Positions 346 to 62,580 of a stretch of 64,000 bases of DNA are shown one piece after another (positions within the stretch are counted from its first letter, which is position 1; each line of letters begins with the position of its first letter). The position numbers and the translations under genes were made by a program. This DNA is from Thalia democratica (taxonomy: Eukaryota): contig OZ241829.1 in assembly GCA_965202585.1 (NCBI GenBank), positions 29,884,001 to 29,948,000 of the forward strand. Reading direction: 5' to 3'. The notes beneath the pieces were generated by a model, which worked only from the letters and a program-made list of their open reading frames with translations, ran no database searches and was not told the DNA's origin.

Positions 346-534
346 TTTGTGAAAGTCTGCCGATTGTGAAAAACGCATACATGAGAGTTAATAACTTGCA
401 AGTAAGTTCACCTGGTGTTTACCTCAGTGGAACAGAAGTTATGTACATATGCGAAGATGGTTACGAAATCAAACAACCAAATATCACTTGTGGTTTGGAT
501 GGAAAATGGAGTGACGTTGTCTTCTGTTATCCTA
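346..534 (+). CDS. CCP exon 1 (type D)
   Basis: 189 nt, phase 1-1; CESLPIVKN..CGLDGKW..CYP. Confidence 0.9.
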
Positions 535-3500
535 GTTCGTACTTTAAAACTGTTGTTTATACATATATAATGGAACTTAAGAATTTTATACAACTTATTT
601 AATAATATATTCATTATGAATTTAGATAAATTTTATTTATATTTTTAAGACTAAGTAAGTGTGTCTTAAAAATTTGAACATTTTTATAACTAAAAATTTA
701 ATTTGTTTTCGTAAAAGGTTAGTATACTTTTTTTTAAATATTTTAACAAAACTAAAGAAATAAACAAGTAACACAAGTTTTTTCAATATTTAGTAAATAA
801 CCAAGTTAAAGCTCTACTTGAGTAAAAATTATAAACGTTTTGGCTTTCTCATTTCTAAATTAATTTTAAACTTTGCCTACGGGCTGAAAAATAAAAAAAA
901 TACTGCTTATTTTTTCCACAATTTCAAACAAAGTAGTCTTACAAGTTTGTTTTCTAGTTTGCGGACCACTGCCTGACATACCGAATTCCATCAGAAACAC
1001 AACTGAAGACGTGGAAATAAGTGAAGACGTTTCTCTTGACTTGGTGGTAGAGAATTTTTGTGACACAGGCTTTAACCTGGTACCTCCTGGCGTTGACACC
1101 TTTCTCAGATGCCTTACAAGCGGATCATGGCAGTATGACGATTTTCAATGCCTTAGAGGTGTTTTTGTTTAAACAATATATTTACTAAATGTTATTATGC
1201 AGTAGCTTTAATTATACGTTTCAAAGAAAAGACTTGAGAAAATAAATAGAGACCATTTCCTACAAAAATAAAATGTTGTGTGTAAGAAATAAAACACTTT
1301 ATTCTTATTATAATGCCAAAAACTATTTCAACTATCTAATAACAATAAAAAGTAATTAAATGTTAGGTCATTCTCTCTAAAATCATAAGCTGACTTGTTG
1401 TATAAAGTTTAATTTTGCTGTATAATTTCTACTTATAGTACATTTTATATCTACAAAAAACATCACGGTAAAAAATCCAAAAAACTCTATTGTAAATGAA
1501 GTTTAAATTTTAAAAAATATATATTACGAAAACTTAAAAATAACGACAAGTTGTTAACCTGAAGCAAACGTTTTTAGAATGTCCTCCTTTCAACCAAACG
1601 ACAAACGTGAAGATAACCAACCACACGATGCTCCATGATGAATTGTACGTGTCAGGATCTGTTGTGATCTTTTCCTGTGAAGGTCAAGAGATTTTGAGCG
1701 ATCCAGCAACAAGCATCGTAGGTTGTTCTCAGGACGGATACTGGAACTCATCTTTTCCCACCTGTGAACTAGGTTGGCTAAAGTTAATTATCGTGATATT
1801 TTTGTCTAATTTTTAATATGATTTGTTTTTATTTCAACCTAAAACTTTATTAACGTTTATTTTTGTACTAATCTGAGTTCTAATTTTCTAGAATGTCCAT
1901 CTCCAACATTAGACATTTTGAACGGTTCAGTTCACCTACTAACCCAATTACGCACTGATTACTTTCTCAACGGTGACGTAATAAAATACACGTGTGATGA
2001 GGATTACGAGCTTGTCAGCGGAAATGAAAACCATTACTTCTATGCATGCCAGAGCGGATCTTGGAACAATACAAGGATCCCGCTGTGTATTAAAGGTAAA
2101 AATATATGAAACCTTTAAACAACATTTTCGTAGCGTTTTAACTGCTTATATCGCAAAAGTTATTTAAAGAATTACTAATTTAAATTCTCATTAGCTTAAA
2201 ACTTAGTTATCCACTTGAAGTGATTTAAACCAACTAACAAAGCTATATTATAGTTTATGTTAATAAGATTGATAAGTACCTAAGTTGTTTTTCAAAACTA
2301 ATCGATACTTGCGTACACTCGTAATATCAAGCTCATCTTTAAAATAACTGTAACCTATTCAGAGTGTCCTGAACCACCTGAGAGTCCCCAATCCACGTGG
2401 CAAATCACGCAGTCTTACAGACAGGGAGAGTTTTACACCGGCACCACCGTCACCTACAAGTGTCAGCCTCTTCACGAGTTCGAATGGGACATGCCCGCAG
2501 AACGAACTTGCGACAGAAACGGAAATTGGAACATAGAAGACGCGCCAAAATGCCAACCATGTTAGTTTGTATTTATTTTTTTGTTAGTATGCTTTATATT
2601 TCATTCTTACTTAAGCTTTATTTTATGTTAAGCTGCTAGATTAGACTGTTCGTTAACACACAGCTATCCAAAGTAAAAAGCTAAAACAAAACAGATAATT
2701 TTTTAATTACAACAACAACTTTTCACAGTGTGCGAAGTGCCTCCGTTTGTCGACGATGCTTCCGTTCGAGTGCTGTACGAAACAAGAATTCAAAGCGGCG
2801 AAGTCGTACTGAGCAGGATCGAGTACGAATGTGATCAAGGGCACCTCATCAACGACGAGCTGCTGAGTCAGACTCGATGCTCGTACGGAGCCGTTTGGGA
2901 CTACCAAGAGTTGCCAGTGTGCTTCAAAAGTAAACAATCTAATTAATTTCGTAAAATCTTTAAACTTTTTATACATGATATCTTCACGAAATTATAAACA
3001 GTCTGTGAAGATAAGCCCATCGTGAACAACTCTATGAACAGCACGTATCTGTTCGTTGAAAAAAGAGAGGAAGAATATGTGAAGGGAACGACACTTGAAT
3101 ACAATTGCACTGATAATCACAAGCTCAGTCAACCGGAAACAGTTTGCGGCGTTGATGGAAAATGGACCCCTGAAGTCTACTGTCATCCAGGTAAAATTAT
3201 TTTGCATGTATCTAGTTTAGACTCAATTCTATTTTATAAATAATGAAGACATGATGTAAAAAAGAATGTAAGAGCAAGCTTATGCTTTTTGATTACAGCG
3301 TTCTATAGTATATTACAATGACTAGCTGTTTACGTTTAGACTGTGGAAAATCTGCTACAATACCGAACACGGAAAAGAAAATCATCAAGCAGTTTTCAAT
3401 CTCTAGCAGTTCTTTGTTCGGAAGCAGTAGTCTGGAGTCAGTAGTGGAGTACAGTTGCGTGGGAGACTACCATGTTGTACCCAGTACTGCTGACACCACT

Positions 3501-6500
3501 CACGCTTGTTTGACCGGCGGCTTCTGGAACTTTGACGACTTTGTATGTTTGAAAGGTGATACAAGCAATTTTTTTATGTACAGACTAGACATCTGTACAG
3601 AATACATGTATACACAATTAGTAAATATACTGTAATTTCTCATATTTTTTGTAATACTTCTGATTCCACAATTTTAAGTTTTTCAAATTACATTTTAGTT
3701 TCAATTTTTAGAGTGTCCTGCAATGTCAATAAGCGACCTGATAATCGTCAACGTAACGACGGAAAAAGAAAAGGATAGGCTTTTCAGCGGAACTGTGGTT
3801 GATTTCAAGTGTGTGAACGGGTATAGAATGAACAACTCGACTCTTAGTGAGAACATGTGCTTACCGAACGAAGAGTGGAAACTTGAATTTCCATCGTGTG
3901 TTCCAGGTTAGTTTAGTATTAGATATTTTTTTTAAGAAGTACGACAATTCAAGCTCACTTTAAGGTTTAAAAATCTTAAGAAGTAATGTTTGAAAAGTCG
4001 ACGGTACTAACACTTGTTGTTGTTCTACAGCATGTTCTAAACCTTAAACAAAACAAAGCTGATAAATTATAAAAATGTTTTAGATTGTGGTACTCCTAAA
4101 ACTTTTGACAATGCAACGCTAATTATACAATCAAGCAAAGAAGTTTATGATGAAGAAAGTGTTATAAGTTTGCCTCAGCAAGTAACTTACAACTGTAGCG
4201 CAGGATACGGTTTGGTTAAATTGTCGCATAAGGATGGAATCTGCGTTGGAGGAAAAAATAGTTCGCAGTTTTTATTCGGACCCGAAATGCTGGAGGATTA
4301 TCCGCAATGCGTTTTAGGTATTATAAAACGATAATATTAGTTAAAATGTTTATAACAATAAAAAGAATAATGGGATTAGTGTATTTGTAAGTCTATATAA
4401 TTTTCAAAGCAATAAATAAGCAAATAAAACAAATAAAGATATAGATACGTTCTTTATCAATCAGTAGGACTACTCCTTTATATAAAAATTTCAACAAATC
4501 TTTAAGTTTTCATTACAATAAAGAGGTTTTAATAAAAAACTACTTTTAAAGACTGTGGTGTCCCTAAAAGCTTCCCAAACACAACTGTCGAAGTCACTAT
4601 GAACGAGTCAGACGAAATTTATACGGTAAACACTCTTTTGACTTTTTCTTGCACAGCTGGCTATCAAATTTTACCTGCAGAAGATAATAAGGTTGTTTGT
4701 AATGAAGCAGGTTCATGGGAAGGCGAAGTAGGAGAATGTTACACAGGTGGGCTTTATATTCTAATAACAAAATGCATGTCTAATAAGCAAAAGTAAGGCT
4801 CGTTGGTAGTTTTTGTAAAGCACATAATACATTCTACTTACAACAAAATTTCAACTTGAACATTTTTCAGAAATCCAATGTCTGTCACCCGCGCCTGTGG
4901 TGGGCGCCACATACGAAGTAACAAAATGGGTCTACAACGGCATCTACTTGTCCGGCACTGAGATCAGCTTCACTTGTACTAAAGGTCTCACCATGACCCC
5001 TGATTCTTTCACCGGGAGAGTTTGCAAAAACAACGGGCTTTGGAGCTACCCCGCCAACGGAATCAGGCCAAAATGTGTAAAAGGTTTTTTTTTTTTGTAT
5101 AAAACCATACAATCATGAAGCTTGTATGATTTAGTTTGTTGCTAGCTTTTGATAAAACAAAAGTGTTTGATTTTAGACTGTGGAAAGTTTCCGTCAGTTG
5201 AAAATGGCAGAAAGGTTTTACTTGAATCAGTTATGAAGAACTCTACCTACGCAATAGAAGTCAGCGTTGAGTACATTTGCAATGAAGGTTTTATTTGGAG
5301 CTTGGACAGCCCGACGACTATAAACTGTGGGTTTGGTGTTGACGGTTTGGAATACGAAATAGGAAGATGCGTTGTTGGTAAGAGTAATTTAAATTGTGCT
5401 GATATATGAAAAGTTTATGTCGGTGTGGTAGGAATATTAATGTATTTAAAGATTAAGTTTAACAAATATATGAGTTTAGTCCTTCATATTGTAATTTATT
5501 TTAGTTAAGTTGCAAGTTTTATTAACAAGTTAATGTGACTAATCTAAACTTCGAGAAACACAACTACCTTTTAATACTTAATAGCAATAAAGTTCATAGT
5601 TTTCCAACTACTTTATAGTTATTAAGTTCTTTAACTTACTTTTGCAAATAAAAGCTAGTAGTACAAATGCCCTAGTAAAACTCGCAGTCTTACGTTTGTT
5701 TACACCATAACAAACCACTATGTTTATAACAGAGCTGCCGGAATTACCTGCAGAAATACAGAATGGAAGAGTGATTGTGAACAACAAACCGAGACAGAAC
5801 TCGAGCGTGGTCGGAACAGACATCACGTATGAGTGCGACGGAGACTTCGTTCTTTCAACTGGAACTTCCCAGTTTGTCGGAAACGCCGACGGCACTTGGA
5901 ACAGCGATGATCTCAACCCCATGTGCTTGAGAGGTAACAAAAAGCTAAAATTAGTATTGCAAATAGAGTGAGCGAAAGAACTATGGTTGAAAAAACGCTG
6001 TTTGATAGCTGTTTTACTAACTAATTTTAAGTTTTTGACTCTTTCTATCTTCAAATATAAGAGCAGTTTGTTTACTTCTATTTTTTTATGTTATTTATTT
6101 TTTCTTAGCAGTGCTTGACCTTTTCCTACACTAATACTTTCTGATGATGTTATAGTTAAATACTTTTTTGCAGAATGTCCGGATATACTAGACGTTTTGA
6201 ATGGCTCAATAGTGATAACAAATAAGATTTTGTCTGGACGCATGCTAGCTGGTGATGGGTTCAAGTACAAATGCGATGAAAACTACAAGTTTCACGAAGG
6301 TGCTGAAAGCGATTACAACTACGAATGCCAAGAAAACGGTTCTTGGGACAATGATAGAGCAGCACTTTGTATCACCAGTAAGTTACATTTGTTATATGTA
6401 TGATTTTTTCGATATGCTTCACTTTTAAATTTGAGGTTTTTAGTTTAAACCAACTTTTAGTTCTGACAAGTATTAAGATAATAAAAGCAGTCTCACAACT

Positions 6501-9500
6501 TTTCTGTATCGTTTTTAAGTTTGCTCGTTACAATTTAAAAGATATTATTTGCAGATATTATAAAACGGTTGCAATTCAAAATATGTTAATTTGAAAAAAC
6601 ACTTACAGTTTATTTAACACTCGATTGTTTTCAAGGGTGTCCAGACCCGCCCAAGCTCCCCGCTTTCGTGTCGAGGAAAATTTCCTTCACGCACATCACA
6701 GGTGAGTTTTGGACGGACACGGAGCTGACTTACGAGTGCGAGCCCATGCACAGCTTTCTGTTCGGTGCCAGTAACACTCGTGTCTGCGGCAGAGATGGAC
6801 AATGGGACGATAGCACTGTACCAAGATGTGTTCCAAGTTAGTTGAAAAGTTCGATTTCCGATATATAGTTCAATATGTGGTTTTGACACTCTGGTATTTT
6901 ACATAAGAATAATTCTAACATCAACAATGGCTTTACCTTTTTATCTATTTAAAATTTCACTTTTTAAAGCCACTGAAACTTTTTAAAGAACTACAACTCA
7001 GGGCCTCCTAAAAAGGCCGATTCAATTTAAACGCTTAATTGATTAAAATTTCACCAGTTTGCGAAGCCGCACCGACGGTAGAAAACAGCGGAATAACCAC
7101 CAGTGAACAGACGCTTTCCAACGGTGAAGTTGCCGAAAGCACTGTGACGTACACATGCAACGCGGGGTATTACATTGATGACGAAACGAACAGCGTGTTG
7201 ACATGTGAACTTGGTTCCGTGTGGAGGCCATCGAAGTTGCCTGTGTGTTTGAAAGGTTGCTGTAGTCATCCTTTGTCATAAAGTGTTTTAGCCGTGAAAA
7301 AGCAATAACAGTTTTATCGTTTCAGTTTGTGATCCGGTGCCGGACGTGGCGAACTCGAGAGCTACGTTGAAAACCGACGAATCAAGAGAGGGTGACTACG
7401 TGAGTGGTACAACTTATGAGTTTGAATGCAACCAACACTACGTTCAAAGCCACACCGAGTCAGCTTGTGGCGTCGATGGAAAATGGACTCCCGTGGTTGA
7501 ATGTGTGCCAAGTAAGCAGTTTATGGAGAATTTATTAAAACCAAAATAGGAAACTGATACATAATTGTTTAACGCACAGATTGTAAGTCACCAGCTACAA
7601 TTAAAAACGGTTTCTTCGATATTAATTTGGAGGTTGAAGTTTTGGTCGGTGGTGATGCTAAAACTTTCCAACAAGAGGTAGAATACAGTTGTAACGAAGG
7701 TTACGCGACGGTACCTTCGGCAGAAAATGTTTTGACTTGCAGTGGAAGCACAGGAGAATTTGAGCCATCTTTACCTGAATGCCTTCGTGGTAAAATACTA
7801 TGTATTATTGCAAATGCAAATTTTATAAAAACAATTTTGAAACAACTATGACTTAACTTTATAGATATAAATTATTTAAATATTGAGCTGTTACATTCCC
7901 TTTTAAAAACTAAATAATGGTAACAAAGTAATTTTTTTTTTACAAAACGGTAGCAATAACAAAAATATTAAGGTTAAGAAGTATTTCGTTGTAAATTGTT
8001 TGCAAATAGTGTGTCAATCTAAATAAATCTTTAAAATATCTGTACGATTTTAAACTAAACTTATCTGATGTACAATAGAAAAAGACTATAACATTTCTAC
8101 TCCTATTTTGAATTTTGATAGAGTGCCCCAAACCGCTGAAAGTTGAGAACGGAGAGCACACTGTTCACGAGAGGTACTTGTCCGGAATGTCGGTGAAGTA
8201 CACTTGCTCACCTGGGTACAGGCTCCTACCTGCAAACGAAGACACAATCACATGCACTGATGACGGGTCTTGGTCTGGAGACTTTGGCGGCTGCTATTCA
8301 GGTTAAAGTTGTTTGAAATCTTACTGAGTCGTGAGTTTGCAGCAAGTTTTAGTTACAAAAACAAAAAGCAGCTCTGTATTTCAAAGATTTTTTTTTGTGA
8401 ATTAACAACTTTTACTGCAGAAATCGAGTGTGAAAGCCCGCCTGGCATGGACAACGCCGTGTATGAAGTTCAAAAAGTTATTTATAAAGACGTTTTCCTG
8501 CCCGGCACTGAGCTGAAGTACACTTGCAACGGTGGGTACATCATGGCACCGGAATATTATGTCGGGCTGGTTTGTGGCGAAGATGGTAATTACGCCGCAC
8601 TGAGTACAGTCCCAGGCTTCGCAACCGGAGCTTGCTTGCCAGGTTTGGTTAATTTGTTGTAGTTTAGAAAAGTTAAAGCTTTAAATCACTCGAGTCTGCT
8701 TTCTTTAACTGTCATAACAAACATATTGTTTTTTGTGTTCAGCCTATTTAATTGTATGTAACGACGACTATGTAAGTTTTCTACGTGTAGCAACTTCATT
8801 GTAGCTATTATCTCATATTTTATATTTTGCTATGTTAAATTTAATTCTATTTTGTCAATGATTTAGAAAAAAAACTTTACTATCTTAATAAAAAACTTGC
8901 TCTCAATGAGTATTAACAGTCTAAATTAACATAACGGTTTTATCAACACTTCTGAATTAATTTCAGATTGTGGAGACTGGCCATCAGTAGAAAATGGAGC
9001 CAGAGTCAACCAAGATGTGAGAATGGTAACATTCGAAATTTTTTTAATTTTGTCTGCGAGGTTCTATTGTGACGAAGGGTACATTTATTCAAGAGAAAAC
9101 AGTTTGGTTACTTGCAGTGATCCCACCAGAAAATTGGAATTTGGAAACTGTGTTAAGGGTACATTTTTTTTGCACCTTATTTTAAGTTTTTATACTTAAG
9201 CAACTTTTTGTATAATGCTTGTAAACAAAAAATAACATCAACATTTTATAACTTATGGTTTCTATTACACAATCAAACATTTAGTTCATAAATAAACTAG
9301 TCCAAAAGTATACATAGCCGGAAAATTTTGACTTTTCTAAAATTTTAAATTAAATAAAAAACATTTCCAAGCCACTTATATATTCTTTTCATCAAACTCG
9401 TCCAAATTTTCAAAAACTTTTCAAACATCCATCAGCGTGCCCAGAGATACCAGAAAGCATAGAAAACGGAATAGCAACAGTAGAAGAGAGGCCAAGAGAA

Positions 9501-24500: not shown

Positions 24501-27500
24501 GTCAACAAACCTCCGACGGCACTTACGACAGCGACATCGGAAGATGCGTGCCGTGTAAGTTGCTTATCACATCAGTTTTACTTGCACTTCAGCATATCTC
24601 AAGTTAAGCCTTTCAAAACTAGCAGCGGGTAATTAAAAAATGCCTGTTCAATTCATTTTATTAAAGATAATTAGTGCAAATCAAACAAATTACTAGTTTT
24701 TTTAACCAAAAGTATTTTGAATGTGCCATAAAATTTATTTTTATGTTACGATGATTCTTGTTAAAGGACTTTTCATTTAAAGTTTAACTTTGAGGGGGAT
24801 TTTGTATTTTTTTTTTAAACACGTTCGATTATAGTAAGTACGTTTTGTATTAAAAGACTGTTAACGCTTCTCTACTTCTGTAGCATGTGCACCAGAGTTG
24901 CCTATGTCCATAGAAAATGGAAATGTTGAAGTATTCCAATCTTACCCGCCGAGCTACACGGCTTATAGAACGAGTTTCAAGTATGTTTGCTACGAAAACT
25001 ACAAGCTTTCTACTTCGTTCAACGAAATTACTTGTGGTGCTGACGGATGGAACAATCAGGTGACTCAGCCCAGATGTCTAAAAGGTGAGGCTTTCGCTCG
25101 AAAATTAGCAGCTATAAAGATAAATAAAACTTAAAATACTAAACTGAAACAAAACAGAATGCCAGCCTCCAGGCGTACTTTCAAACGGCAAAATTACCAT
25201 CGACCGAGTTCGAGAAGGTTACATCCTGAGCGGTGACGTCATAAAATACAGTTGCGATGTGGGTTTCCAGTTTCACGAGGGAGATGAAACAGACTACGTC
25301 AACGAATGTCAAGGAGACGGCAGCTGGAGCAACACAAGAGTTCCATTCTGCGTCAAAAGTATTTTGTCAGATCCAAACGTTATTTAAGTCGATATTTTCT
25401 TCAAATTTTTAATTTTCAATGTGTTTTTAGAATGCCCCAATCCACCCGAAGGCCAAAGATCATCGTATGAAATTTCATTCACGCATATTAAAGATGAATA
25501 TTGGACTGACACAAAAGTGACATATGCGTGCAATGCTGGCTACACTTTGTTTTGGGAACATTACGTTTATCAGACATTGGAACGTGTTTGCACCAGTGAT
25601 GGGGTTTGGGATGACAACACAGCTCCAAAATGCGTTCCAAGTTTGTAGTTTTATAACACGAAAGTTTATTCATCACATTTGAACTTTGAAGCATAAAAAC
25701 AAAATAAAGTTGGCTGGTATATTTTCTAACTAAATAAATATAAAATGAAGCTCTAATGTAACAAAAGAAAAAAAATGTTAATATTCAAATAGCGTGTGAA
25801 GTTCCACCATTCTTGGACAATTCGTATATTAAAGAAATAAACGCAACTCACGTGGAATACTGGTGCATTAGAGGTTATTACATCAGAGGCGCGGACAACA
25901 GGCTCTTTGGATGTCAGAAGGCTGAGTCTGGAGATTTTTGGTATCCTTCAAAATTACCTACATGCCTCCCAGGTATTTTCAAACTAGTTAACATTTGCTC
26001 ACGTTTAAAATTTTTGATTAAAACGACCTGATATTTTCAGGCTGTGGTGTAAACCCCGTGGTTCCAAATTCGAGTGGGAGTAAAGCCGTAGTGAATAATT
26101 CTGTGGTCATTGATAATGAAGTCTTTTTCACACACGGCGCCAAGATTGAATACACGTGCAACAACAACTATGGCTCTCGGTATTCACAGACAACTTGCAA
26201 CAGAAACGGAGAATGGTCACATGAAGTCATATGCGTTCCAGGTTAAAACAAATTCATAATAAGAAAAAAAATTCTACAGTTTTGTTGAAACACACTTTTT
26301 AACAGACTGCGGTCAGCCTACTCAAATACAAAATGGGGTCGTAGAGAAGTCGATTGACGGAAATAGCTTTAGTATCAATTCAGAAGACTTACCTTATTAC
26401 CAAAATAACTTTCCTCAAACGGCACTGTACACTTGCCACCAGTTCCATTCAATGCGACCAGGAACAGATAATCAAGTTGAATGTAGCACAACAACTTTTA
26501 TGTTCGAGCCGTCTGCCCCTGATTGCTTACCTGGTAGTTTATCGACATGTTTTAACAATCGTTATAATTGACCTTCGGGTTTTCAGTTTTTACTGTATAA
26601 GTTTATATGTTTTTTTCACAGAATGCCCAGACCCACCAACGTTTAAAAAAGCAAGTTTCACAAAAGAAGATAAATACTTACCTGGTTCAACCGTAGAGTA
26701 CACTTGCGAAAAAGATTACTCGTTCTTACCCGAGGGAAAAAACACAATTTCTTGCGCTGAAAACGGAACTTGGACCTTGAATCTCGGCATATGTTACTCT
26801 AGTTTGTTTCCGGTTTTTTTTTAATAACCCGCTTCTACATCTGAATATTTTTTGTAATGCGCTTGCTTACTTATTAAAAGTTTAAACGCTCGATATCTAA
26901 TTGATAGTTTTTTTACACAATTATAGACAAATTATTGTGCAATTAAAGCTATGCTCATAAGACTATAAATTAACTTAAGGTTTTAGTATAACAAAGCTAA
27001 ACATACTTTAGACGTACGGTGCAAAGAATACACGTTTGAAAATCTTGAAAACTCGGATCCGAAATTTATTTGGATACACTCCCCCTACTACCTGCCTGGC
27101 ACTGAAGTGAGGTATGAGTGCCTTCCTGATTACGTGAAAGCGCCATCGTATTACAAAGGAGTTGTTTGCGGCGAGGACGGTCAGTGGCAACCAGTGACTA
27201 CGAACAGTTTGCACACATCGGCTTCTTGTATAGCAGGTTTAATGTTTAACTTTGTTTTTTAAGTTTCAAACTTACAAGTGCTAAAAAAACTTTTAAGACT
27301 TAGCGTTTAAAATATGGTTAGACTATTATATAAAAAAACAAATGTAAGCTAAATTAATTTTTGATTCTTGCTGCTTTACTTTAAATCAAGCAGTTATTTT
27401 TTTACAAGTTTTTTGTTTAAAATGTTTTAAGAACTGTTCATATTCAAAACATTCATGGTGTTTGAACCACTAAAAACCGTATTTGTGCATTAACTTTTTA

Positions 27501-30500
27501 TCACCTAAAAGCAACATGTTTGATAATTTGAAACTTGAAAACAGTCTAGGAATAAAATGTCACCTCTTCTATACTGATAAACAGACTGCGGTGAGTTTCC
27601 ACCAGTAGACAATGGTTACTTGACGCGTTTAGTGGGGCCATTTGAAATAGACGAAAACCGATTTGTAACAACCGAAGTGAAGTACAATTGCCACCGGGGC
27701 TACGTTTACTCGAAAGAAATCAGCAAATTTACTTGCAATCACCCCTCGGACACGTTTAATTTTGGAACCTGCGTCACAAGTATTACTTAGTATAGATATT
27801 ACAAGTTTAGTTTATTTTTAAGCCACGAGTGTAAAATATAACAGCAAGTTGTCTTTTACCGTAACAAAAATAACACTATTTAAAAACGCGTTCACTCTGC
27901 CTTTTGTGTTCAACTAATCTTTCAATGTACAGCTTGCAATAGTGACCTAAAAGGCTCAAGTCCAAGTATGAATGTGATATTATCCGCAGCACGCTCGATT
28001 TACATTACACCAGGAACAACAGCAGAGTACACTTGCAGGTATAAAGGCAAGTATCTTACGCCGGGCATCGCATCGTCTTGCGTCTCAGTTTCCGATTGGA
28101 GATATCCCGACGAACTTTTGTGCCCGAGAGCAAAATACCTTTGCTTGTCGGACGGAAGTTGGGAAAGAATCGGGCAGTTTTCTTGCCGCACAGGTTTGTG
28201 AAGAAGTAACTGTGCAAAAAACAAACGGTACAAAACAAAATTTAAACTGTAGTTTTTAGCTTCGCAACGTTTTGTTTTTACTTAAATAGACTTAGGATCA
28301 ACCAAGTTACGCTTTTTTCCAACAATTTTTTTATTGCTTACGGATGTCTAAACTTTATTACACTTTTATAAAACCACAGTACCTCTACGAGATAAAAATT
28401 AAATTTAGTGTGTTTTAGTATTTTAATTCCTTTGATAACTTAAATTTCAACTTCACACCAACAACATGTACAAAACTTAAGTGTTACAAAGCTTATACAT
28501 TGAAACAATTTAGAATGCGGGAGTCCTCCCGAGAGTAGTACTACAGAATGGACTTTAATTAGTTTTGATAGAGTCGACGGCAAATTTTTTACTGGCAGTT
28601 TAGTCTTTTACTCCTGTGTTGATACCACTTTTGTGGCAAAAGAGTCCAAAGCGCAACGTACTTCATATTGTACAGACAAAGGAGATTGGGACAGGAGCGA
28701 AGCGCCTATTTGCGTTCCTGGTAAGACTATAAGTATACTTTTCTGTCTTAACTTTTACAGCGCTATTTATGATAGCTTTTTTGTGTGCAACTTACTTGCT
28801 AGAAAATTTTTTCATGTCGTAACTATTAGACTAGCAATCTTTTTACTCTTATTTGCATCTGAAACCATAAAAAAACTCAGCTTGCACTCGACTACCAAAG
28901 ATTACTTTCGGAACATCTGAGGTTGTCAGAAACGGTCACCCTGACGGTCATAGCGTGCAGGGAACCGCAGTGAAAGTCACTTGCGACGACAATTACTACC
29001 TGTCAGATCCTGTACACTCACCGGCTTCTGTAACTTACGAGTGCGTAGAAGACGCCGCAAGCAGCCACGTTAAATGGAACAACCCAGACGTGCACCCTAT
29101 ATGCTTGAAGAGTTTGTGATCTTTTATATATTTCAATTGACTTTTTTCTGGTTTTGTGTAACTTTACCTGTATCTAATTTGCTTAAAACAATACTTACAA
29201 AAGACTTGAATTGAGCACTTTTCATTTAAATATTTTCAATATTGAATACTTGAATTTTTGTATGATACAAGTACAGTAACCTCTCGCTTATTCACGCACA
29301 TTGTGTCCACAGAAAAAGTACGTAAAGATACGAGAGATCGTAATGATACGAGAGGTACCAAATATACTTACTTTAATGGCTGTTTTTTGATATTGCTTCT
29401 ACTTAAAAGCAGACTGGGGACTTTCCCACTTTTAACAATTTTTTACTTTATTTATAAATATGAAGAGAAAAGATAAAACCATACATATGTTAAAAAAAAG
29501 GATTTAAATTTATATAGAATAATAATAGTTGTAGAAAAATTTACTAATTTTAATAATAAGTAGATTTTATCTTTATGTGACTTATTTGATACTTAACATT
29601 TATACTCTATTCTACTTAGAAAATTCAATTTATAATTAAGCATTTGTTTACAATAAAGAACTTAGACTAAAAAAAGTCAAAAGAAAATTAGTAATATAAG
29701 TACTACAAAAAAACAGTTGAGATTTGTGTTAAGTGTAAGTTCTATATTTATTAAGCATCACTTTTTGTTAGGAAGTTTAATTAGATTTCTTTTTTAAATG
29801 CTTATACATCTATAGGGCAAGAGAGCTGTATAGTTTATTTGTGTTTTAAAATATTTATTATACTTACTCACAATTTCATTATACTTCCATTATTTAACAC
29901 AGTCATATTTCTTTCAGAATTTTAATTTAATCTCTTATTGTTAACAAAATTTCTGATATACCAAAGTATAAGTAAATATTTATCAATTAGTCAAGGAACA
30001 TAAGTTTACAAAGTCTAAAGATATATAGAGAGGTGAGTTAGCATTAAAAAACATGTTTAAAAGTATACAATAAACCTAATTTGTGCAATATTAAAAAAAA
30101 ATTTAAAATATTTATTTTTTGAATTTTTTTGAATTCTATAATAAACGAGAGTGCGTAACGTCACGAGTGCGTAAAGATGCGAGAGGTTACTGTATTTAAG
30201 CTTTCATGCTGTAAGAAAATTTTGTTAAGAAAATTTTATAAATTCTACAATTTTGTTCATTATTATGACGTAATTATACTACTAAAGATTACATTCTATT
30301 TATGTTCAAAACTAGTTTAGTTATCAAAAAACGTTTGCATGTAAAGTAAGTTAGTTTTAAAAAAATTTAAACAATTTTTTTTTAAACATAGCTTATAGTT
30401 TTTTATTTAAACTTTCTAAGTTTTTATTTAGGTAATTAAATTCTGAGTTTTTTATAAAATAAGTGTATAACAGTTAATTTATGTTTGATTTTAAATTCAA

Positions 30501-33500
30501 ACAATGTTACAAAAGTTGTTAATTCAAACACTTTTTGTTTAAGATGAGGTGCATGAATATATATATATATTTATTATTTTATATAAGTTTGACACACTTA
30601 GCATACCGTATATCGTTACAGAGGGTTAGTAAGTCAGATGTTTTTCTACCTTAGAAAAATTAAATTAATTAAACTTTAATTTAGCTTTTATTATTTAACT
30701 GTTCAAAATATAGGTTTAATCGTTTGCTAACAAAAGATCCTAGTGAAATAACTTAACTGGAATATAAATAAAAACAACTTGTACAGTAATCTTCCTTTAT
30801 TGTACCAACATATGTTTCTGTGTGTTGATTCGTTAAAACACAGAAACATATGTTGGTACAATAAAGGAAGGTTACTGTACAATTTGCTTTTATTATTTAT
30901 CATTTTATTATATATTACTCACAATTACTATGTATTTGTTTATACCATAACACTTTTATTATGCATTGCATTTTATGCAGCAATTATATTGTTATATAAA
31001 AAATTAGATTTTTTGTACTTATCCAGAATTTTGATTATCCGGACATGTTTACAGAAAAGTCTTGCCAAACGTGTCCGGATAAGTGAATAAGCACTGTATT
31101 GCATTAGTATCAAATTATGACATTGCTTTTAACCTTTTATTGTAGTTTTATACTGCTTATATTCTAATTTCAGAATATTTCTAACTAAATGTTTACATTT
31201 GGAGCTATTAGTTTACTTTTCAAAACTTCTGTTACGATTGTTTATTAGAATAAAAAAGTTGCTAAAAGTAACACTAACATTTATTTACTCATCAAAAACA
31301 GAAAACTGTTATTTCTATCTTTTGTTGTTACCATCTACATACAAGGAAGCTTCGAAAGAATGCCAAAAGCAATCAGGAAGACTTCTTCAATCGACCTTAA
31401 CCGACGCTGATTATACCACGTTTGTTTGTTTGAGAACAAGTTTTCATACAAACAACAACGCTTAAACTTCACAATTTTAACAGGCATTTGAAGCGAGTAG
31501 AGGTTACGCTGAAGCAAAACAAAAACTGGAGGTACGCGTACGTGCACAAAAACTTAATTTTGAGCGGAGACGCAACATATATAGTGAAATATTGCAAAGA
31601 CTTTGCAGCGGGCTCTTCTCCTGAGTGTCTGGCCTTCGACAGCAACTCCAAATGCATCAAAGACGTGAGCTGCGACGAAAGACACGTTGCAGTTTGCGAA
31701 GTTCCCTACTTCTCCATAGAACTTACCGAGTCGGCAAATTACGAAAACAACGATCTGCAATGCAGAAAAAAAGAAGGGAGGCTGCTTTCCAGAGCTTTTA
31801 TGGTTCCGTTTTATAGGAGGTTGTTTACTATGTGTTACTTCAAGTTGATGGTTTAAAAGCTTGTTTTCTGCCATGCCTTTCAGTTTATTTTCTGACAAAT
31901 CAAAGTTTTAATTTACTAAACATTAATATGGCTTAAGTTAAAGATTTAAATTTTATTAAAAGTTTGAGTACGTGGTATTTCTTGTGTGCTCAGTTTACTT
32001 GGTGATCAAGTTTTTGTTAAATATTTTTACTTTTTCTACTATTGACACATACTTCTATATTATACAGCTAGTTTTAAACAATTATTTTTTCATTATTTTG
32101 ATCAACATCTTTTTTACTAACAACAAGTCTGTTATTTAATTGCGCTTTGTAAGCTTTGATTGAAAAGTTATAGTTACTTTATTCTGTAACTTTTAATGCG
32201 AAAACCCAAACAGTTTTAAACAAAGTCTTTGTTCTCGGTTCTCTTTTAAACTCGTCAAATTAAGGCAACAAAACACACGTATCACAAACATTTAAAAACA
32301 ATACAGAAACTTAGAAAGCTGGATAGACGAACTGACAGAAAACGCCGACATCTACTTGGGACTTTACCGGCCGGGCGATCAAGTTTCCGCCGGCGGCCAC
32401 GTCCTTACCGGGTACGGAGAAAAAATAGAAATTTCACGGCTGCAAGACAACAGTCTCCCGCTCAGGTTCTGCCACCGCCAGCCGGACAACCTGGTGAGGC
32501 AGCAAAACTGCGTCATGTACAGCAGGCGGGACAAATGCGCGCACGACGGCTTCTGCTACCCCTCGAGACGCACCATGTGCGAGCGTTCGACGTGCGCCGC
32601 GACCGAGACGACCGCGGGAGCTGAAAAGTGCCAAGGAGGAAGCTGGTACGTCGATACCAGGATCGACCACCAAAGTGCAAACCTGAACATGGCGTGTTAC
32701 AGAGGTACGAACTGCTGTTTGGTTGTTTATGCGGTTCAGATTACTTTTTGTAACGATGCAAGTTATATAAAAACTAACCTGTTTTAACGGATAAACTGCA
32801 TTTAGTGCTGTTTTTATTTAAACTTTAGCAATCTAATGCAACAAATAAACAGGGTTTGAAGTAAGAAAGACTCCGAAGCGGGGAACGTGGGCGGAGGTGA
32901 GGAAAATGTGCCGAGATTTGAGGGGTGACCTCGCGCATAACACATTGAAGAAGTACGTCGGTCAGCAACAAGTCAGCTACAAAGAGTCAGTTCAAATTGC
33001 TTTTACGTATGAAGCTGTTTAGTCAGTTTAGATGCCTGATTAATGAATTTTTGTTTTAAAAAAAGTTTTTCAGTTTTAAATTGAGTTTTTTTATCGTTTG
33101 CAAAATGCTGCACCAAAATATCGGTAGTGAAATATCAATTTGAAATTTAAACTGTGAATTCAGTTGCAAACAGCATAATTGCCATTGTTTAGAGCTTTTT
33201 GGTGAACTGTCATGTAATTTACATAAGCGTAAATAAAAAAACTCTGAATTTTGGTAACTATTGCTAACGGTTACATGACAATTCAAATTCGGACAACTTA
33301 AATTCCGATAACTAAGATTCTTAAAAAATAATTAAAAGGCTATATCTCCAAAAGTAATATAAATTTGATAAAAAAAAACAACTCGTATGTATATATTATT
33401 AAAATCTACAAGCCACTATTTGTTTTTTGCAAAATCTTAAATATTTTTTAAGATTTAAAAAAAAAAAATTAAATTACTATGTTTTTTTACTTTATTTAAG

Positions 33501-34065
33501 CCATTTCTCAAAAAATATTTTATGTTATGCAAAAAAAAACGGTTTTTATATATTAATAGGATCTACACATGTATTTTTTTATGTTTGACAAATATACATC
33601 AATTTTTTTGTTGTGACGCTTTTAAATTTTTTTCAAAGAATTTGAATTGTCTGAATTTGAATATTCGTGCACCCATTGCTAACAGAATCACCTTAATTGT
33701 TTCAAACGTGTGACATTTTCTAAAATACCTTTAAAATTTGTGTAGTTTTCATCTGACTGTGAAAGTATTGAACCAACAAACATTTTTACAGGCAAATAGA
33801 CGACCTCCTTCAAACGGAAGGGGCGTGGGTGGGCGTCGTAGTCACCGATTTGGATCTGAGCACTTCCCAATTCGAATACCTCGACGGCGAGCTGTTTTTC
33901 GCCGATGAAAGCTCTGCTAGCAGAAGCCTCAATTACTACTGGCAGCGCGGCTACAACTACAGAAGACCCCAAGCGAACCGGGCCGTCGCCATCAACTCCC
34001 GAAATTTTGTGCATTATCCCACCGACACCGTGCTACCGGGACTTTGTGAAATTGGAATGGTGTGA
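346..34065 (+). CDS. Giant multi-sushi (>=65 CCP) plus 3 C-terminal C-type lectin domain gene; 5' end outside window; 70 exons here
   Basis: 65 AG/GT-bounded phase 1-1 exons with the CCP pattern C..C..(W)..C splice in frame to 5 CTLD exons ending LCEIGMV-TGA at 34063-34065; AATAAA at 34174. Confidence 0.9.
958..1158 (+). CDS. CCP exon 2 (type E)
   Basis: 201 nt; CGPLPDIPN..CLTSGSWQYDDFQCLR. Confidence 0.9.
1578..1772 (+). CDS. CCP exon 3 (type F)
   Basis: 195 nt; CPPFNQT..CSQDGYWNSSFPTCEL. Confidence 0.9.
1892..2095 (+). CDS. CCP exon 4 (type A)
   Basis: 204 nt; CPSPTLDILNG..CQSGSWNNTRIPLCIK. Confidence 0.9.
2363..2560 (+). CDS. CCP exon 5 (type B)
   Basis: 198 nt; CPEPPES..CDRNGNWNIEDAPKCQP. 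Confidence 0.9.
2729..2929 (+). CDS. CCP exon 6 (type C)
   Basis: 201 nt; CEVPPFVDD..WDYQELPVCFK. Confidence 0.9.
3002..3190 (+). CDS. CCP exon 7 (type D)
   Basis: 189 nt; CEDKPIVNN..CGVDGKWTPEVYCHP. Confidence 0.9.
3340..3555 (+). CDS. CCP exon 8 (type E)
   Basis: 216 nt; CGKSATIPN..SLESVVEYSC..FVCLK. Confidence 0.9.
3712..3906 (+). CDS. CCP exon 9 (type G)
   Basis: 195 nt; CPAMS..CLPNEEWKLEFPSCVP. Confidence 0.9.
4084..4317 (+). CDS. CCP exon 10 (type H)
   Basis: 234 nt; CGTPKTFDN..YNCSAGY..YPQCVL. Confidence 0.85.
4552..4746 (+). CDS. CCP exon 11 (type I)
   Basis: 195 nt; CGVPKS..CNEAGSWEGEVGECYT. Confidence 0.9.
4871..5083 (+). CDS. CCP exon 12 (type J1)
   Basis: 213 nt; IQCLSP..TMTPDSFTGRVC..KCVK. 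Confidence 0.9.
5177..5377 (+). CDS. CCP exon 13 (type K1)
   Basis: 201 nt; CGKFPSVENG..EIGRCVV. Confidence 0.9.
5733..5933 (+). CDS. CCP exon 14 (type L, lacks Cys1 and Cys3)
   Basis: 201 nt; ELPELPAEIQNG..YECDGD..FVGNADGTW..PMCLR. Confidence 0.85.
6174..6377 (+). CDS. CCP exon 15 (type A)
   Basis: 204 nt; CPDILDVLNG..CQENGSW..LCIT. Confidence 0.9.
6636..6836 (+). CDS. CCP exon 16 (type B)
   Basis: 201 nt; CPDPPK..ISFTHITGEFW..RCVP. Confidence 0.9.
7058..7255 (+). CDS. CCP exon 17 (type C)
   Basis: 198 nt; CEAAPTVEN..GYYIDDETN..LPVCLK. Confidence 0.9.
7326..7511 (+). CDS. CCP exon 18 (type D)
   Basis: 186 nt; CDPVPDVAN..CGVDGKWTPVVECVP. Confidence 0.9.
7580..7789 (+). CDS. CCP exon 19 (type H)
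   Basis: 210 nt; CKSPATIKNG..TGEFEPSLPECLR. Confidence 0.9.
8122..8301 (+). CDS. CCP exon 20 (type I)
   Basis: 180 nt; CPKPLKVENG..GSWSGDFGGCYS. Confidence 0.9.
8421..8642 (+). CDS. CCP exon 21 (type J2)
   Basis: 222 nt; IECESPP..APEYYVGLVCGEDG..ACLP. Confidence 0.9.
8967..9158 (+). CDS. CCP exon 22 (type K2)
   Basis: 192 nt; CGDWPSVENG..LEFGNCVK. Confidence 0.9.
9436..9636 (+). CDS. CCP exon 23 (type L)
   Basis: 201 nt; CPEIPESIENG..CGENGEW..NPKCFK. Confidence 0.9.
9742..9933 (+). CDS. CCP exon 24 (type K1)
   Basis: 192 nt; CPPFPDITNG..EVGKCVE. Confidence 0.9.
10285..10491 (+). CDS. CCP exon 25 (type L)
   Basis: 207 nt; CPPLPEF..YTCQDDGSWDNQDLKPECLR. Confidence 0.9.
10777..10977 (+). 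CDS. CCP exon 26 (type A)
   Basis: 201 nt; CPARDGN..SDYVYLCEQSGFW..PLCIT. Confidence 0.9.
11032..11441. mobile_element. Degenerate hAT-like non-autonomous element (intronic)
   Basis: Right end reads CAGGGGCGAGAAACGTACGGCCTGCGGGCC on the minus strand, a hAT-type terminus; left end weak; no TSD seen. Confidence 0.35.
11520..11726 (+). CDS. CCP exon 27 (type B)
   Basis: 207 nt; CPPPPS..DGVWDNYKAPECAP. Confidence 0.9.
12167..12358 (+). CDS. CCP exon 28 (unique type M)
   Basis: 192 nt; CSAPPAIPY..CKGGSWSEAIRCPPETLK. Confidence 0.85.
12551..12599. mobile_element. 49-bp hAT/Charlie-like mini-element
   Basis: CAGGATTTCTC...GAAACCCTG termini; flanks CTCTAAAT/GTCTAAAG (6/8 match, NTCTANAN-like). 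Confidence 0.55.
12680..12877 (+). CDS. CCP exon 29 (type B-like)
   Basis: 198 nt; CKDPPERSTSSW..CQSDGSW..DCIQ. Confidence 0.9.
12993..13199 (+). CDS. CCP exon 30 (type C)
   Basis: 207 nt; CDIVPPIDY..CSYGNGW..LPTCKK. Confidence 0.9.
13382..13576 (+). CDS. CCP exon 31 (type D)
   Basis: 195 nt; CDEPPSIRN..CDMNGTWSPVEDCYP. Confidence 0.9.
14861..15064 (+). CDS. CCP exon 32 (type E)
   Basis: 204 nt; CKISPDIYN..SLESVVEYTC..FKCLR. Confidence 0.9.
15202..15396 (+). CDS. CCP exon 33 (type F)
   Basis: 195 nt; CPPFNVT..LSDP..WNITFPTCKR. Confidence 0.9.
15563..15796 (+). CDS. CCP exon 34 (type A)
   Basis: 234 nt; CPTPGITELKNG..CSQDGNW..PLCIT. Confidence 0.9.
15904..16101 (+). CDS. CCP exon 35 (type B)
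   Basis: 198 nt; CSDPPAG..ISFTHIKREFW..APICVP. Confidence 0.9.
16169..16372 (+). CDS. CCP exon 36 (type C)
   Basis: 204 nt; CEDPPTVDN..WNYTSLPVCLK. Confidence 0.9.
16428..16613 (+). CDS. CCP exon 37 (type D)
   Basis: 186 nt; CDSLPTVEN..CGVDGTWSGKVECYP. Confidence 0.9.
16899..17099 (+). CDS. CCP exon 38 (type E)
   Basis: 201 nt; CGTSPTILN..CENGGNF..FECLR. Confidence 0.9.
17525..18176. mobile_element. TTAA-flanked MITE (Kolobok- or Harbinger-like), 652 bp
   Basis: TTAA-GGGCATAGGGG ... CCCTATATGCCC-TTAA; related left end at 42199-42212. Confidence 0.65.
18552..18749 (+). CDS. CCP exon 39 (type G)
   Basis: 198 nt; CPSVPT..LFSGTVIKFSC..WESPFPYCLK. Confidence 0.9.
18919..19116 (+). CDS. CCP exon 40 (type B)
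   Basis: 198 nt; CPDPPEG..CGKDGNWDDNTAPKCTP. Confidence 0.9.
19346..19543 (+). CDS. CCP exon 41 (type C)
   Basis: 198 nt; CETPPTVPN..GYYIDDESN..LPVCLK. Confidence 0.9.
19655..19843 (+). CDS. CCP exon 42 (type D)
   Basis: 189 nt; CDNLPTVSN..CGVDGKWTPLIECVP. Confidence 0.9.
19911..20120 (+). CDS. CCP exon 43 (type H)
   Basis: 210 nt; CGDFTEIVNG..TGAFEPALPECFR. Confidence 0.9.
20482..20661 (+). CDS. CCP exon 44 (type I)
   Basis: 180 nt; CEDPPLVDK..GSWSGVLGKCYY. Confidence 0.9.
21626..21823 (+). CDS. CCP exon 45 (type B)
   Basis: 198 nt; CPNPPNS..CDSEGNWNDSNPPKCVP. Confidence 0.9.
21889..22092 (+). CDS. CCP exon 46 (type C; near-identical to exon 36)
   Basis: 204 nt; 2 nt differences from 16169-16372. 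Confidence 0.9.
22148..22333 (+). CDS. CCP exon 47 (type D)
   Basis: 186 nt; CDSLPTVNN..CGVDGTWSGKVECIP. Confidence 0.9.
22470..22670 (+). CDS. CCP exon 48 (type E)
   Basis: 201 nt; CGKSQSIPN..CVNGGNF..FQCLK. Confidence 0.9.
22967..23161 (+). CDS. CCP exon 49 (type G)
   Basis: 195 nt; CLSDE..CLPNGKWELVFPTCVP. Confidence 0.9.
23265..23468 (+). CDS. CCP exon 50 (type H)
   Basis: 204 nt; CGSPAIKNG..SGNFEPEIKCLT. Confidence 0.9.
23608..23787 (+). CDS. CCP exon 51 (type I)
   Basis: 180 nt; CGDPPNIPN..GKWEPEGGKCYT. Confidence 0.9.
23956..24201 (+). CDS. CCP exon 52 (type J1)
   Basis: 246 nt; QRCVTNP..TMTPDSFYGQLC..KCVR; acceptor chosen by phase. Confidence 0.85.
24351..24554 (+). CDS. CCP exon 53 (type K1)
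   Basis: 204 nt; CGAFPTIENG..DIGRCVP. Confidence 0.9.
24884..25084 (+). CDS. CCP exon 54 (type L)
   Basis: 201 nt; CAPELPMSIENG..CGADGW..QPRCLK. Confidence 0.9.
25158..25358 (+). CDS. CCP exon 55 (type A)
   Basis: 201 nt; CQPPGVLSNG..CQGDGSWSNTRVPFCVK. Confidence 0.9.
25431..25640 (+). CDS. CCP exon 56 (type B)
   Basis: 210 nt; CPNPPEG..ISFTHIKDEYW..APKCVP. Confidence 0.9.
25793..25972 (+). CDS. CCP exon 57 (type C)
   Basis: 180 nt; CEVPPFLDN..WYPSKLPTCLP. Confidence 0.9.
26041..26241 (+). CDS. CCP exon 58 (type D)
   Basis: 201 nt; CGVNPVVPN..CNRNGEWSHEVICVP. Confidence 0.9.
26306..26533 (+). CDS. CCP exon 59 (type H)
   Basis: 228 nt; CGQPTQIQNG..FEPSAPDCLP. Confidence 0.9.
26622..26801 (+). 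CDS. CCP exon 60 (type I)
   Basis: 180 nt; CPDPPTF..GTWTLNLGICYS. Confidence 0.9.
27012..27236 (+). CDS. CCP exon 61 (type J2)
   Basis: 225 nt; VRCKE..APSYYKGVVCGEDGQW..SCIA. Confidence 0.9.
27585..27779 (+). CDS. CCP exon 62 (type K2)
   Basis: 195 nt; CGEFPPVDNG..FNFGTCVT. Confidence 0.9.
27933..28193 (+). CDS. CCP exon 63 (6 Cys, internal insertion)
   Basis: 261 nt; CNSDL..YTC..SSCVSVSDWRYPDELLCPRAKYLCLSDGSW..FSCRT. Confidence 0.85.
28514..28720 (+). CDS. CCP exon 64 (type B)
   Basis: 207 nt; CGSPPESSTTEW..KGDWDRSEAPICVP. Confidence 0.9.
28881..29111 (+). CDS. CCP exon 65 (last CCP, L-like)
   Basis: 231 nt; CTRLPK..VTCDDNY..YEC..KWNNPDVHPICLK. Confidence 0.85.
29274..30192. mobile_element. 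pogo/Tigger-like MITE, 919 bp
   Basis: TIR CAGTAACCTCTCGC perfect for 14 bp, 23/26 extended; TA on both flanks. Confidence 0.85.
30784..30877. mobile_element. 94-bp hairpin MITE (Tc1/mariner-pogo type)
   Basis: 40-bp inverted arms with one mismatch, 14-nt loop, begins CAGTAA, TA flanks. Confidence 0.85.
31302..31419 (+). CDS. CTLD exon 1 (start of CTLD1)
   Basis: phase 1-2, 118 nt; NCYFY..TYKEASKECQKQSGRLL. Confidence 0.85.
31484..31819 (+). CDS. CTLD exon 2 (end of CTLD1, start of CTLD2)
   Basis: phase 2-2, 336 nt; CLAF..KCIKDVSC..AVCE then YF..QCRKKEGRLL; donor at the same domain position as in CTLD1. Confidence 0.8.
32307..32704 (+). CDS. CTLD exon 3 (end of CTLD2, lead-in to CTLD3)
   Basis: phase 2-1, 398 nt; YLGL..FCHRQPDN..NCV..KCAHDGFC..TMCE..CQGGSW..ACYR. 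Confidence 0.85.
32853..32985 (+). CDS. CTLD exon 4 (CTLD3 N-half; donor ambiguous: 32952, 32985 or 33006)
   Basis: phase 1-2; GTWAEVRKMCRDLRGDLAH. Confidence 0.75.
33269..33674. mobile_element. Mutator-like MITE, 406 bp
   Basis: Perfect 9-bp direct repeat ATTGCTAAC at 33260-33268 and 33675-33683; about 36-bp imperfect TIR starting with G; related end at 57469-57503. Confidence 0.8.
33792..34065 (+). CDS. Terminal exon (CTLD3 C-half and stop)
   Basis: phase 2 start; GAWVGV..FEYLDG..YYW..PGLCEIGMV*. Confidence 0.85.
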
Positions 34066-51610: not shown

Positions 51611-51687
51611 AATCTACACAAGGTTATTACAAATTTTACAAATTTGTTTATTTAATGTTAATGTTTAAATTATTTATGTTAATGATT

Positions 51688-52366
<679 letters not shown>

Positions 52367-62148: not shown

Positions 62149-62580
62149 TATAGGCAAAAGCTTTTTCTCGTTCACAACAAAGTTCCCTGCAAAAATTATA
62201 ATTTATTTTTTAAAATAAGCTATTATTAAATATTAGATGGCAAACTTTTAATTAACTTACAAGCTTACCAATGATTTCCTAAAGTGGATGATATCAGCGA
62301 TTCAGGTCAATTTTTAATATCAAGCAGCACTGACTGTTTAGGGCAGTGGTCTTCAAGGTGTACACTGGTGCAAACTAGTGTAAACAAAAACTTTTTTAGG
62401 GTACATGAAAATTTTAGGGTGTTTAAAATGGTAATTTTTTTTTTGTTTAGTTAAACGATAAGTTAAGCATTGTATTGATATTCAGCCCTGATGATTTTTT
62501 ATGAATTTGCTTTATTAGTTATTCTGCTAACTGACCATTTTAGTACTCTCAAGGCCGAAATCAATTTAGTTGAACAATTC

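Follow-up and report, generated by a model that had tools for sequence, protein, structure and literature searches.

The stretch analyzed here, a window of 64,000 nucleotides from Thalia democratica, consists of AT-rich eukaryotic DNA without N runs. Its 5′ half is taken up by a 70-exon gene model on the plus strand (346–34065), whose exons join into 14,369 nt and read as 4,788 codons in one frame. The only stop is the TGA at 34063–34065, at the very end. All 69 introns are bounded by GT and AG and have a median length of 168 nt, and GC content is 44.6% in the exons compared to 24.9% in the introns. Of the 70 exons, 65 encode CCP (sushi) modules amounting to 4,385 amino acids and five encode a C-terminal tail of 404 amino acids made up of C-type lectin domain (CTLD)-like modules. 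The original prediction, which had placed 65 in-frame CCP exons of about 4,390 amino acids ahead of lectin-like modules and a stop, about 4,800 amino acids in all, is therefore borne out in count, order and length. It had also proposed that the 5′ end of the gene is missing. Indeed, bases 1–345 contain neither an exon nor a 66th CCP as judged by a search for GC spikes followed by translation. The model covers the 3′ 34 kb of a gene whose 5′ end lies outside the window, so that 4,788 amino acids is a lower bound. Within the window, GC spikes outside the model have no coding translation, leaving no hidden CCP and no alternative 3′ lectin exon. Features of the locus other than the CCP and lectin exons are as follows.

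29112–31301, plus strand: largest intron of the model (2,190 nt), between CCP65 and lectin exon L1
34174–34179, plus strand: candidate polyadenylation signal, the first AATAAA past the stop codon and about 108 nt after it
51182–52071, minus strand: ORFs for C2H2 zinc fingers, containing repeated segments that are almost identical; located past the 3′ end of the giant gene
60766–62175, minus strand: intronless BACK-Kelch ORF of 469 amino acids

Downstream of the candidate polyadenylation signal GC content falls to 22–25% with no further exon-like stretches, and the next genes are at least 16 kb away on the opposite strand.

The visible 4,788 amino acids of the predicted product have a mass of ∼534 kDa before glycosylation and a pI of 4.66, with 57 N-glycosylation sequons and 278 cysteines. 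None of the 19-residue windows across this length is as hydrophobic as a transmembrane segment, and a hydrophobic C-terminus is lacking, as the original prediction had stated. To our knowledge, CCP and CTLD domain types are exclusively extracellular. Because a transmembrane segment is lacking, sequons and cysteines are abundant and both domain types are extracellular, the product is predicted to be an extracellular protein.

To map the CCP array, we built an HMM from the CCP exons of the locus and searched with it all open stretches, in any of the six frames, that were 25 codons or longer. Across the whole window this returned exactly 65 CCP units, all on the plus strand and none past 29110. 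Each of the 65 occupies a single exon with AG/GT flanks and phase 1-1 introns. When the exons were scanned one at a time, the Pfam Sushi profile (PF00084) matched 59 of them at E≤0.01 (best 2.6e-12). The modules have a median length of 67 amino acids; 63 of the 65 contain exactly four cysteines and 51 the conserved tryptophan. A linker of exactly 3 residues, counted from the last cysteine of one module to the first of the next, is found at 57 of the 64 junctions. The profile matches, the four-cysteine modules with their tryptophan and the one-module exons of phase 1-1 together identify the units as Sushi/CCP domains. Genes of the RCA, selectin and CSMD groups typically have the same arrangement of one CCP per exon with phase 1-1 introns. 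A single marginal cEGF match was the only EGF match among the 65 exons. Two modules are unusual. CCP14 has lost both Cys1 and Cys3, which is one whole disulfide, and CCP63 is aberrant in having 86 amino acids, 6 cysteines and no Pfam Sushi match. A run of 65 CCPs joined by near-invariant 3-residue linkers points to a long, fairly stiff rod resembling beads on a string. At about 3.5–4 nm per CCP, its extended length would be roughly 200–250 nm.

All-against-all comparison and clustering grouped the CCPs into about 11 sequence types, which recur in a fixed order (ABCDEFABG.IJKLDEFAMINOLKLDE....BCDEFABGEFAMIEFABGM.JK.DE...INO...). The modules, all on the plus strand, are given below with the type and coordinates of each.

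CCP1–5, plus strand: type A, 346–534; type B, 958–1158; type C, 1578–1772; type D, 1892–2095; type E, 2363–2560
CCP6–10, plus strand: type F, 2729–2929; type A, 3002–3190; type B, 3340–3555; type G, 3712–3906; untyped, 4084–4317
CCP11–14, plus strand: type I, 4552–4746; type J, 4871–5083; type K, 5177–5377; type L, 5733–5933
CCP15–19, plus strand: type D, 6174–6377; type E, 6636–6836; type F, 7058–7255; type A, 7326–7511; type M, 7580–7786
CCP20–24, plus strand: type I, 8122–8301; type N, 8421–8642; type O, 8967–9158; type L, 9436–9636; type K, 9742–9933
CCP25–28, plus strand: type L, 10285–10491; type D, 10777–10977; type E, 11520–11726; untyped, 12167–12358
CCP29–31, plus strand, all untyped: 12680–12877; 12993–13199; 13382–13576
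CCP32–36, plus strand: type B, 14861–15064; type C, 15202–15396; type D, 15563–15796; type E, 15904–16101; type F, 16169–16372
CCP37–41, plus strand: type A, 16428–16613; type B, 16899–17099; type G, 18552–18749; type E, 18919–19116; type F, 19346–19543
CCP42–47, plus strand: type A, 19655–19843; type M, 19911–20120; type I, 20482–20661; type E, 21626–21823; type F, 21889–22092; type A, 22148–22333
CCP48–53, plus strand: type B, 22470–22670; type G, 22967–23161; type M, 23265–23468; untyped, 23608–23787; type J, 23956–24201; type K, 24351–24554
CCP54–59, plus strand: untyped, 24884–25084; type D, 25158–25358; type E, 25431–25640; untyped, 25793–25972; untyped, 26041–26241; untyped, 26306–26533
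CCP60–65, plus strand: type I, 26622–26801; type N, 27012–27236; type O, 27585–27779; untyped, 27933–28193; untyped, 28514–28720; untyped, 28881–29111

The underlying cassette can be written D-E-F-A-[B-C/G]-[M]-I-J-K-L and recurs five to six times. Copies of the same type are 40–60% identical, and their introns can no longer be aligned. Since the types recur in a fixed order while their copies and introns have diverged to this extent, the history of the array is one of expansion through old duplications of multi-CCP cassettes, with the exons kept since. Self-BLASTN additionally revealed one pair of segments with a different history.

15968–16617, plus strand: duplication or conversion tract comprising CCP36–37 and their introns; partner at 21690–22337 (CCP46–47)

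The two segments are 87% identical over 650 bp, exons and introns included. Identity peaks at 99.0% between the CCP36 and CCP46 exons and 98.2% in the next intron, and decays outwards. With exon and adjacent intron both nearly identical, this tract is a recent duplication or gene conversion and reflects ongoing homogenization within an otherwise old array. The pair was rejected as a gauge of selection, since the exon (99%) has diverged no more than the intron (98%) and the tract is thus too young. The locus is a clean example of how a giant repeat protein grows, with an old 11-type cassette multiplied and one fresh conversion tract superimposed.

The 404-amino acid tail is composed of three modules of 112, 128 and 164 amino acids, each split by introns, and is encoded by the following exons.

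31302–31419, plus strand: L1 (phase 1 in, phase 2 out), β1-α1 of CTLD-like module 1
31484–31807, plus strand: L2, remainder of module 1 (ending ...VAVCE) and β1-α1 of module 2
32307–32704, plus strand: L3, remainder of module 2 (IYLGL, QPD, ...TMCE) and the N-terminal Cys hairpin of module 3
32853–32952, plus strand: L4 (phase-1 acceptor, phase-2 donor gtacgt), β1-α1 of module 3 (TWAEVRKMC...)
33792–34065, plus strand: L5, remainder of module 3 (AWVGV ... LCE) and the stop TGA at 34063–34065

Family searches of the tail were run with single exon pieces, and the matches obtained in this way were weak but fell without exception in the C-type-lectin clan. L1 matched the Pfam profiles Chordopox_A33R (E=0.023) and Intimin_C (E=0.15), both of which belong to the C-type-lectin clan (CL0056). 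L2 matched Lectin_C (PF00059) at E=0.041 over profile positions 51–106 of 107, scoring 15.1 bits against a cut-off of 22.6, and gave weak PDB matches (E=0.19–0.6) to the C-terminus and last strands of mannose-binding protein A. L3, L4 and L5 had no Pfam match when searched singly, and no lectin exon reached the gathering score. Likewise, L3 found no match among PDB sequences, nor did profiles of three, or of two, of the C-terminal lectin halves. The Pfam scan suggested with the original prediction thus succeeded for Sushi, while for Lectin_C it yielded only the sub-cut-off L2 match. AlphaFold2 applied to exon L3 alone gave an unusable model (pLDDT 39). In the ESM Atlas, Lectin_C accounted for 91, 89 and 88 of the 100 nearest clusters of L2, L3 and L5, respectively, with top scores of 0.92 for L5 and 0.83 for L3. 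The open stretch of L3 extends over 163 codons, far beyond expectation for DNA of 25% GC.

Once spliced, the modules display landmarks in CTLD order: an aromatic β1 stretch, an α1 segment of the form "W/Y..A...C...G.L", a WIGL-like motif (WRYAYV, IYLGL and AWVGV in modules 1, 2 and 3) and a terminal "CE". Modules 1 and 2 are similar to one another by Smith-Waterman comparison (z=4.5, equalled by 5 of 2000 shuffles); the same procedure detected no significant similarity of module 3 to either module 1 or module 2. An intron falls at the homologous α1/α2 position in all three modules, each time in phase 2; the shared position is evidence that the splice model is correct and that the modules have a common ancestor. 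Canonical CTLDs have two disulfides, one joining α1 to β5 and the other joining β3 to the loop past β4, and cysteines occupy all four of these positions in modules 1 and 2. Module 3 has the first canonical pair and the N-terminal pair of long-form domains and lacks the second (C2-C3) disulfide. These features constitute weak but convergent support, with no significant HMM match, and we consider it justified to describe the three modules as very diverged and CTLD-like. The original prediction of three CTLDs accordingly holds for their number and layout; a firm family assignment did not follow, as no lectin exon reached the Pfam threshold. Modules 1 and 2 also share an extra pair of cysteines absent from canonical CTLDs. 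The first precedes the EPN/QPD position by 2–3 residues, and the second immediately precedes the site of the WND tryptophan. This pair may mark a distinct CTLD subfamily.

The residues associated with sugar binding are largely missing. True C-type lectins combine EPN or QPD with WND and with the Glu/Asn ligands of Ca2+ site 2. A QPD motif occurs only in module 2, and WND occurs in none of the three modules. As read from the sequence and an alignment to MBP-A, module 2 shows AHD where WND would be, and glutamine at the position of the expected glutamate ligand. Modules 1 and 3 have neither EPN/QPD nor WND. On these residues, none of the modules would qualify as a Ca2+-dependent carbohydrate-recognition CTLD, and sugar-binding lectin activity of the tail appears doubtful.

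With a profile of the 65 CCPs we searched 1.84 billion representative proteins. All matches were generic CCP giants with 22–25% identity, those at the top including proteins from Lingula, Branchiostoma, Elysia, Mercenaria and Styela clava, and no ortholog was found among these representatives (best identity ≤25%). The best match (P0001) has 78 Pfam Sushi stretches in 4,739 amino acids, proteins of Lingula (5,081–6,559 amino acids) contain up to 89 matches to the locus CCP profile, and a 3,714-amino acid protein of Styela clava has 59 CCPs. SVEP1 has about 34 CCPs. The original prediction had judged the length exceptional by comparison with selectins, CR1 and SVEP1 only. That judgment falls, because database proteins with 78–89 CCP matches mean that the predicted length is not unprecedented and at least 65 CCPs is not a record. 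P0001 was considered as a truncated ortholog and rejected, since its coding sequence is one 14.2-kb ORF, free of introns, on a contig of environmental origin. This uninterrupted ORF (L001:10001-24220, on the 54-kb ENA contig ERZ26052449) is odd as an intronless giant sushi gene, and another short Sushi ORF lies 3 kb downstream on the same contig.

No Lectin_C domain was detected in the non-CCP C-terminal tails of 30 CCP-rich giants scanned, which instead carry VWD, EGF, fasciclin, TSP1, trypsin, P-domain or somatomedin B domains, or nothing recognizable. Neither BLAST nor phmmer detected a relative of the 404-amino acid tail among the CCP-profile matches. Searches of L3 and L5 against 5.8 billion clusters, with a length filter that leaves long proteins outside, gave no match, and exact-pattern scans of the metagenome collection returned no transcript or genomic copies. 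In the literature searched, which covers small tunicate CTLD lectins, proteins with few CCPs and loosely defined invertebrate "P-selectin-like" genes, we did not find (CCP)n followed by a triple C-terminal lectin head. The original prediction did not recognize the architecture as a named gene and held that a characterized protein with it would count against the proposal; the databases and literature searched contain no such protein.

Several known systems resemble parts of this gene. Selectins (P-, E- and L-selectin; C-type lectin group IV) have an N-terminal CTLD followed by an EGF domain, 2 to 9 CCPs, a transmembrane segment and a cytoplasmic tail. They are likewise extracellular adhesion molecules in which a run of CCPs distances a C-type lectin domain from its anchor. 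However, the giant gene places the CCPs first and its three lectin-like modules last, has 65 or more CCPs, lacks EGF and transmembrane segments in the window and has no EPN...WND Ca2+/sugar site; it does not have selectin architecture. CR1/CD35 has about 30 CCPs, a transmembrane anchor, no lectin domains and 7-CCP long homologous repeats. CR1 and other RCA genes share with the giant gene long CCP arrays, short linkers, phase 1-1 one-module exons, a higher-order cassette multiplied through unequal crossing-over and traces of recent conversion. RCA regulators of the CR1 and factor H type are known for binding C3b/C4b and for cofactor or decay-accelerating activity. The CR1 repeats are 60–99% identical, whereas the cassettes described here are 40–60% identical, and sequence similarity between the two is at the generic CCP level only. 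The hallmarks of SVEP1 are VWA, EGF and pentraxin domains and that of CSMD proteins is the alternating CUB-sushi unit; within the window, no VWA, EGF, pentraxin or CUB domain is found between or after the 65 CCPs.

Among annotated tunicate proteins, the nearest analogue is Styela clava XP_077970683.1, also a CCP rod, predicted to be secreted but carrying another kind of head. It has a signal peptide, 59 consecutive CCPs with uniform short linkers, a small non-CCP head at the C-terminus and no transmembrane segment, a design comparable to that of the giant product. Its head consists of two somatomedin-B domains, its sequence identity to the giant product is ∼23%, and its CCPs follow a different cassette order. 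NCBI names this protein (P0013) 'CUB and sushi domain-containing protein 1-like', a misleading name since CCP mapping and a Pfam scan of the tail leave no room for CUB domains. Lingula XP_023933392.1, Elysia KAK3796936.1 and Branchiostoma XP_078687161.1 are also CCP-dominated extracellular giants (3,000–6,500 amino acids). P-selectin-like, SVEP1-like and CSMD-like giants of invertebrates differ in their extra VWD, EGF, fasciclin, TSP1, trypsin and SMB domains. Lecticans (G3 of aggrecan and versican) are comparable in being secreted into the matrix and in binding its ligands through a CTLD close to their C-terminus, but this CTLD is the only one, a lone CCP follows it, and the core bears glycosaminoglycans. 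Some bivalve 'type-A' members of the P-selectin expansion also carry CLECT domains (PMC9484242). House proteins of Oikopleura with CLECT or CCP domains are known, and binding to the cellulose scaffold has been suggested for their C-lectin domains (PMC3390340). Unlike the giant gene, these Oikosins have only one or two CCPs.

Taken together, we consider it probable that the locus is one intact protein-coding gene for a giant extracellular CCP rod with a CTLD-like C-terminal head that serves as a tether or cross-linker. The single-gene reading rests on the junction between the two parts, where the phase-1 donor of CCP65 at 29111 fits the phase-1 AG acceptor of L1 at 31302 and nothing exon-like lies between them, GC spikes in this interval translating into nothing. 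Alternatively, a CCP-only giant could end after CCP65, and a separate secreted protein of ∼430 amino acids with the three lectin modules could start from a leader exon within the intron, as distinct transcription units or isoforms. That intron is the longest at the locus, and it holds a candidate leader exon at 30544–30628 (ATG-MRCMNIYIYLLFYISLTHLAYRISLQRV followed by 'gtaagt', a strong donor) in phase 1, which is splice-compatible with L1 and more hydrophobic than candidates from control DNA. Such candidates are nevertheless common, since AT-rich intergenic controls yield 3 and 6 ATG...GT candidates compared to 5 in the intron, and 30544–30628 lacks an exon-like GC spike. Read-through of the CCP65 donor does reach a stop after two codons, at 29116, but nearly all CCP exons meet a stop soon past their donor, making this uninformative. 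We regard two separate products as unlikely. A decaying locus, in which a recently expanded exon array no longer expresses the full-length protein, might explain why CCP14 is short of two cysteines, CCP63 has six, six exons have no Pfam Sushi match, module 3 lacks one disulfide and the divergence of the lectin modules is so great. Nevertheless, 4,788 stop-free codons are incompatible with neutral decay where non-coding DNA has 25% GC, every intron keeps its GT-AG boundaries, and old cassette copies retain the cysteine framework while their introns have become unalignable. Moreover, cysteines have been lost in pairs (Cys1 with Cys3; C2 with C3), the pattern that selection to keep the domains foldable would produce. 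Decay therefore seems highly improbable.

A functional sub-case of the one-gene reading is that the protein is a complement-type regulator or opsonic receptor, whose cassettes would bind C3b-like fragments in the manner of the CR1 repeats while the lectin head sees microbes. It would then be an immune molecule, humoral or of haemocytes, and not part of the matrix. The cassette repeats parallel the long homologous repeats of CR1, and a role in complement regulation or as markers of individuality has been proposed for CCP proteins of tunicates (PMC5465252). In a single-cell atlas of the ascidian Botrylloides, circulating phagocytes are marked by a multi-sushi 'CSMD3-like' gene, and a different cluster of blood cells by C-type lectins (PMC12212465). 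However, the resemblance to CR1 is generic, lizard CR1 (P0016) sitting among matches that are all 22–25% identical, and the lectin modules lack the canonical sugar-binding residues. We find a complement role rather unlikely.

Returning to the single giant gene as a tether or cross-linker, the original prediction had named a secreted or type II-anchored filament, and the protein would be secreted, or held at an N-terminus beyond the window. The CCP rod would act as the tether or cross-linker and the C-terminal head would bind the ligand, with the repeated cassettes potentially offering multivalent binding surfaces. For module 2, which keeps QPD, the ligand could be a glycan, and for modules 1 and 3, which are missing the Ca2+/sugar residues, a protein or non-canonical ligand would be more likely. 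The likeliest setting would be the extracellular matrix of the tunicate, in tunic or mucus, or recognition by haemocytes. Tunicates are the closest invertebrate relatives of vertebrates, which lends comparative interest to their systems of complement, selectin-like proteins and matrix. Should the model hold, a layout without a name joins those known for C-type lectins and CCP proteins in animals. It could be called an "inverted selectin", its rod exceeding 65 modules and its lectin head being triple and probably non-canonical. Its parts are common and similarly long CCP proteins are known, so that its value lies in being a lead for tunicate matrix and immune biology and not in any surprise in principle. 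As a speculation that we rate quite unlikely, the gene could belong to a family, evolved in this tunicate lineage, of CCP rods tipped by lectin modules, (CCP)n-(CTLD-like)3. A constant head would serve one ligand class and graded stalks would set reach or spacing, the rods being employed as tethers or rulers to build or police extracellular material such as the tunic and the mucous feeding net, or in self/non-self contact. If such a family exists, animal lectins would gain a new functional class.

Two introns of the giant gene contain stretches that match their own reverse complement, at 30767–30894 (128 nt, 89%) and 33300–33658 (∼360 nt, 66%); these palindromes look like hairpin or MITE-like insertions. 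Lastly, the Kelch ORF at 60766–62175 has more than 160 relatives with 35–61% identity, nearly all on short environmental ENA contigs, which suggests a very large intronless Kelch family in the Thalia democratica lineage.
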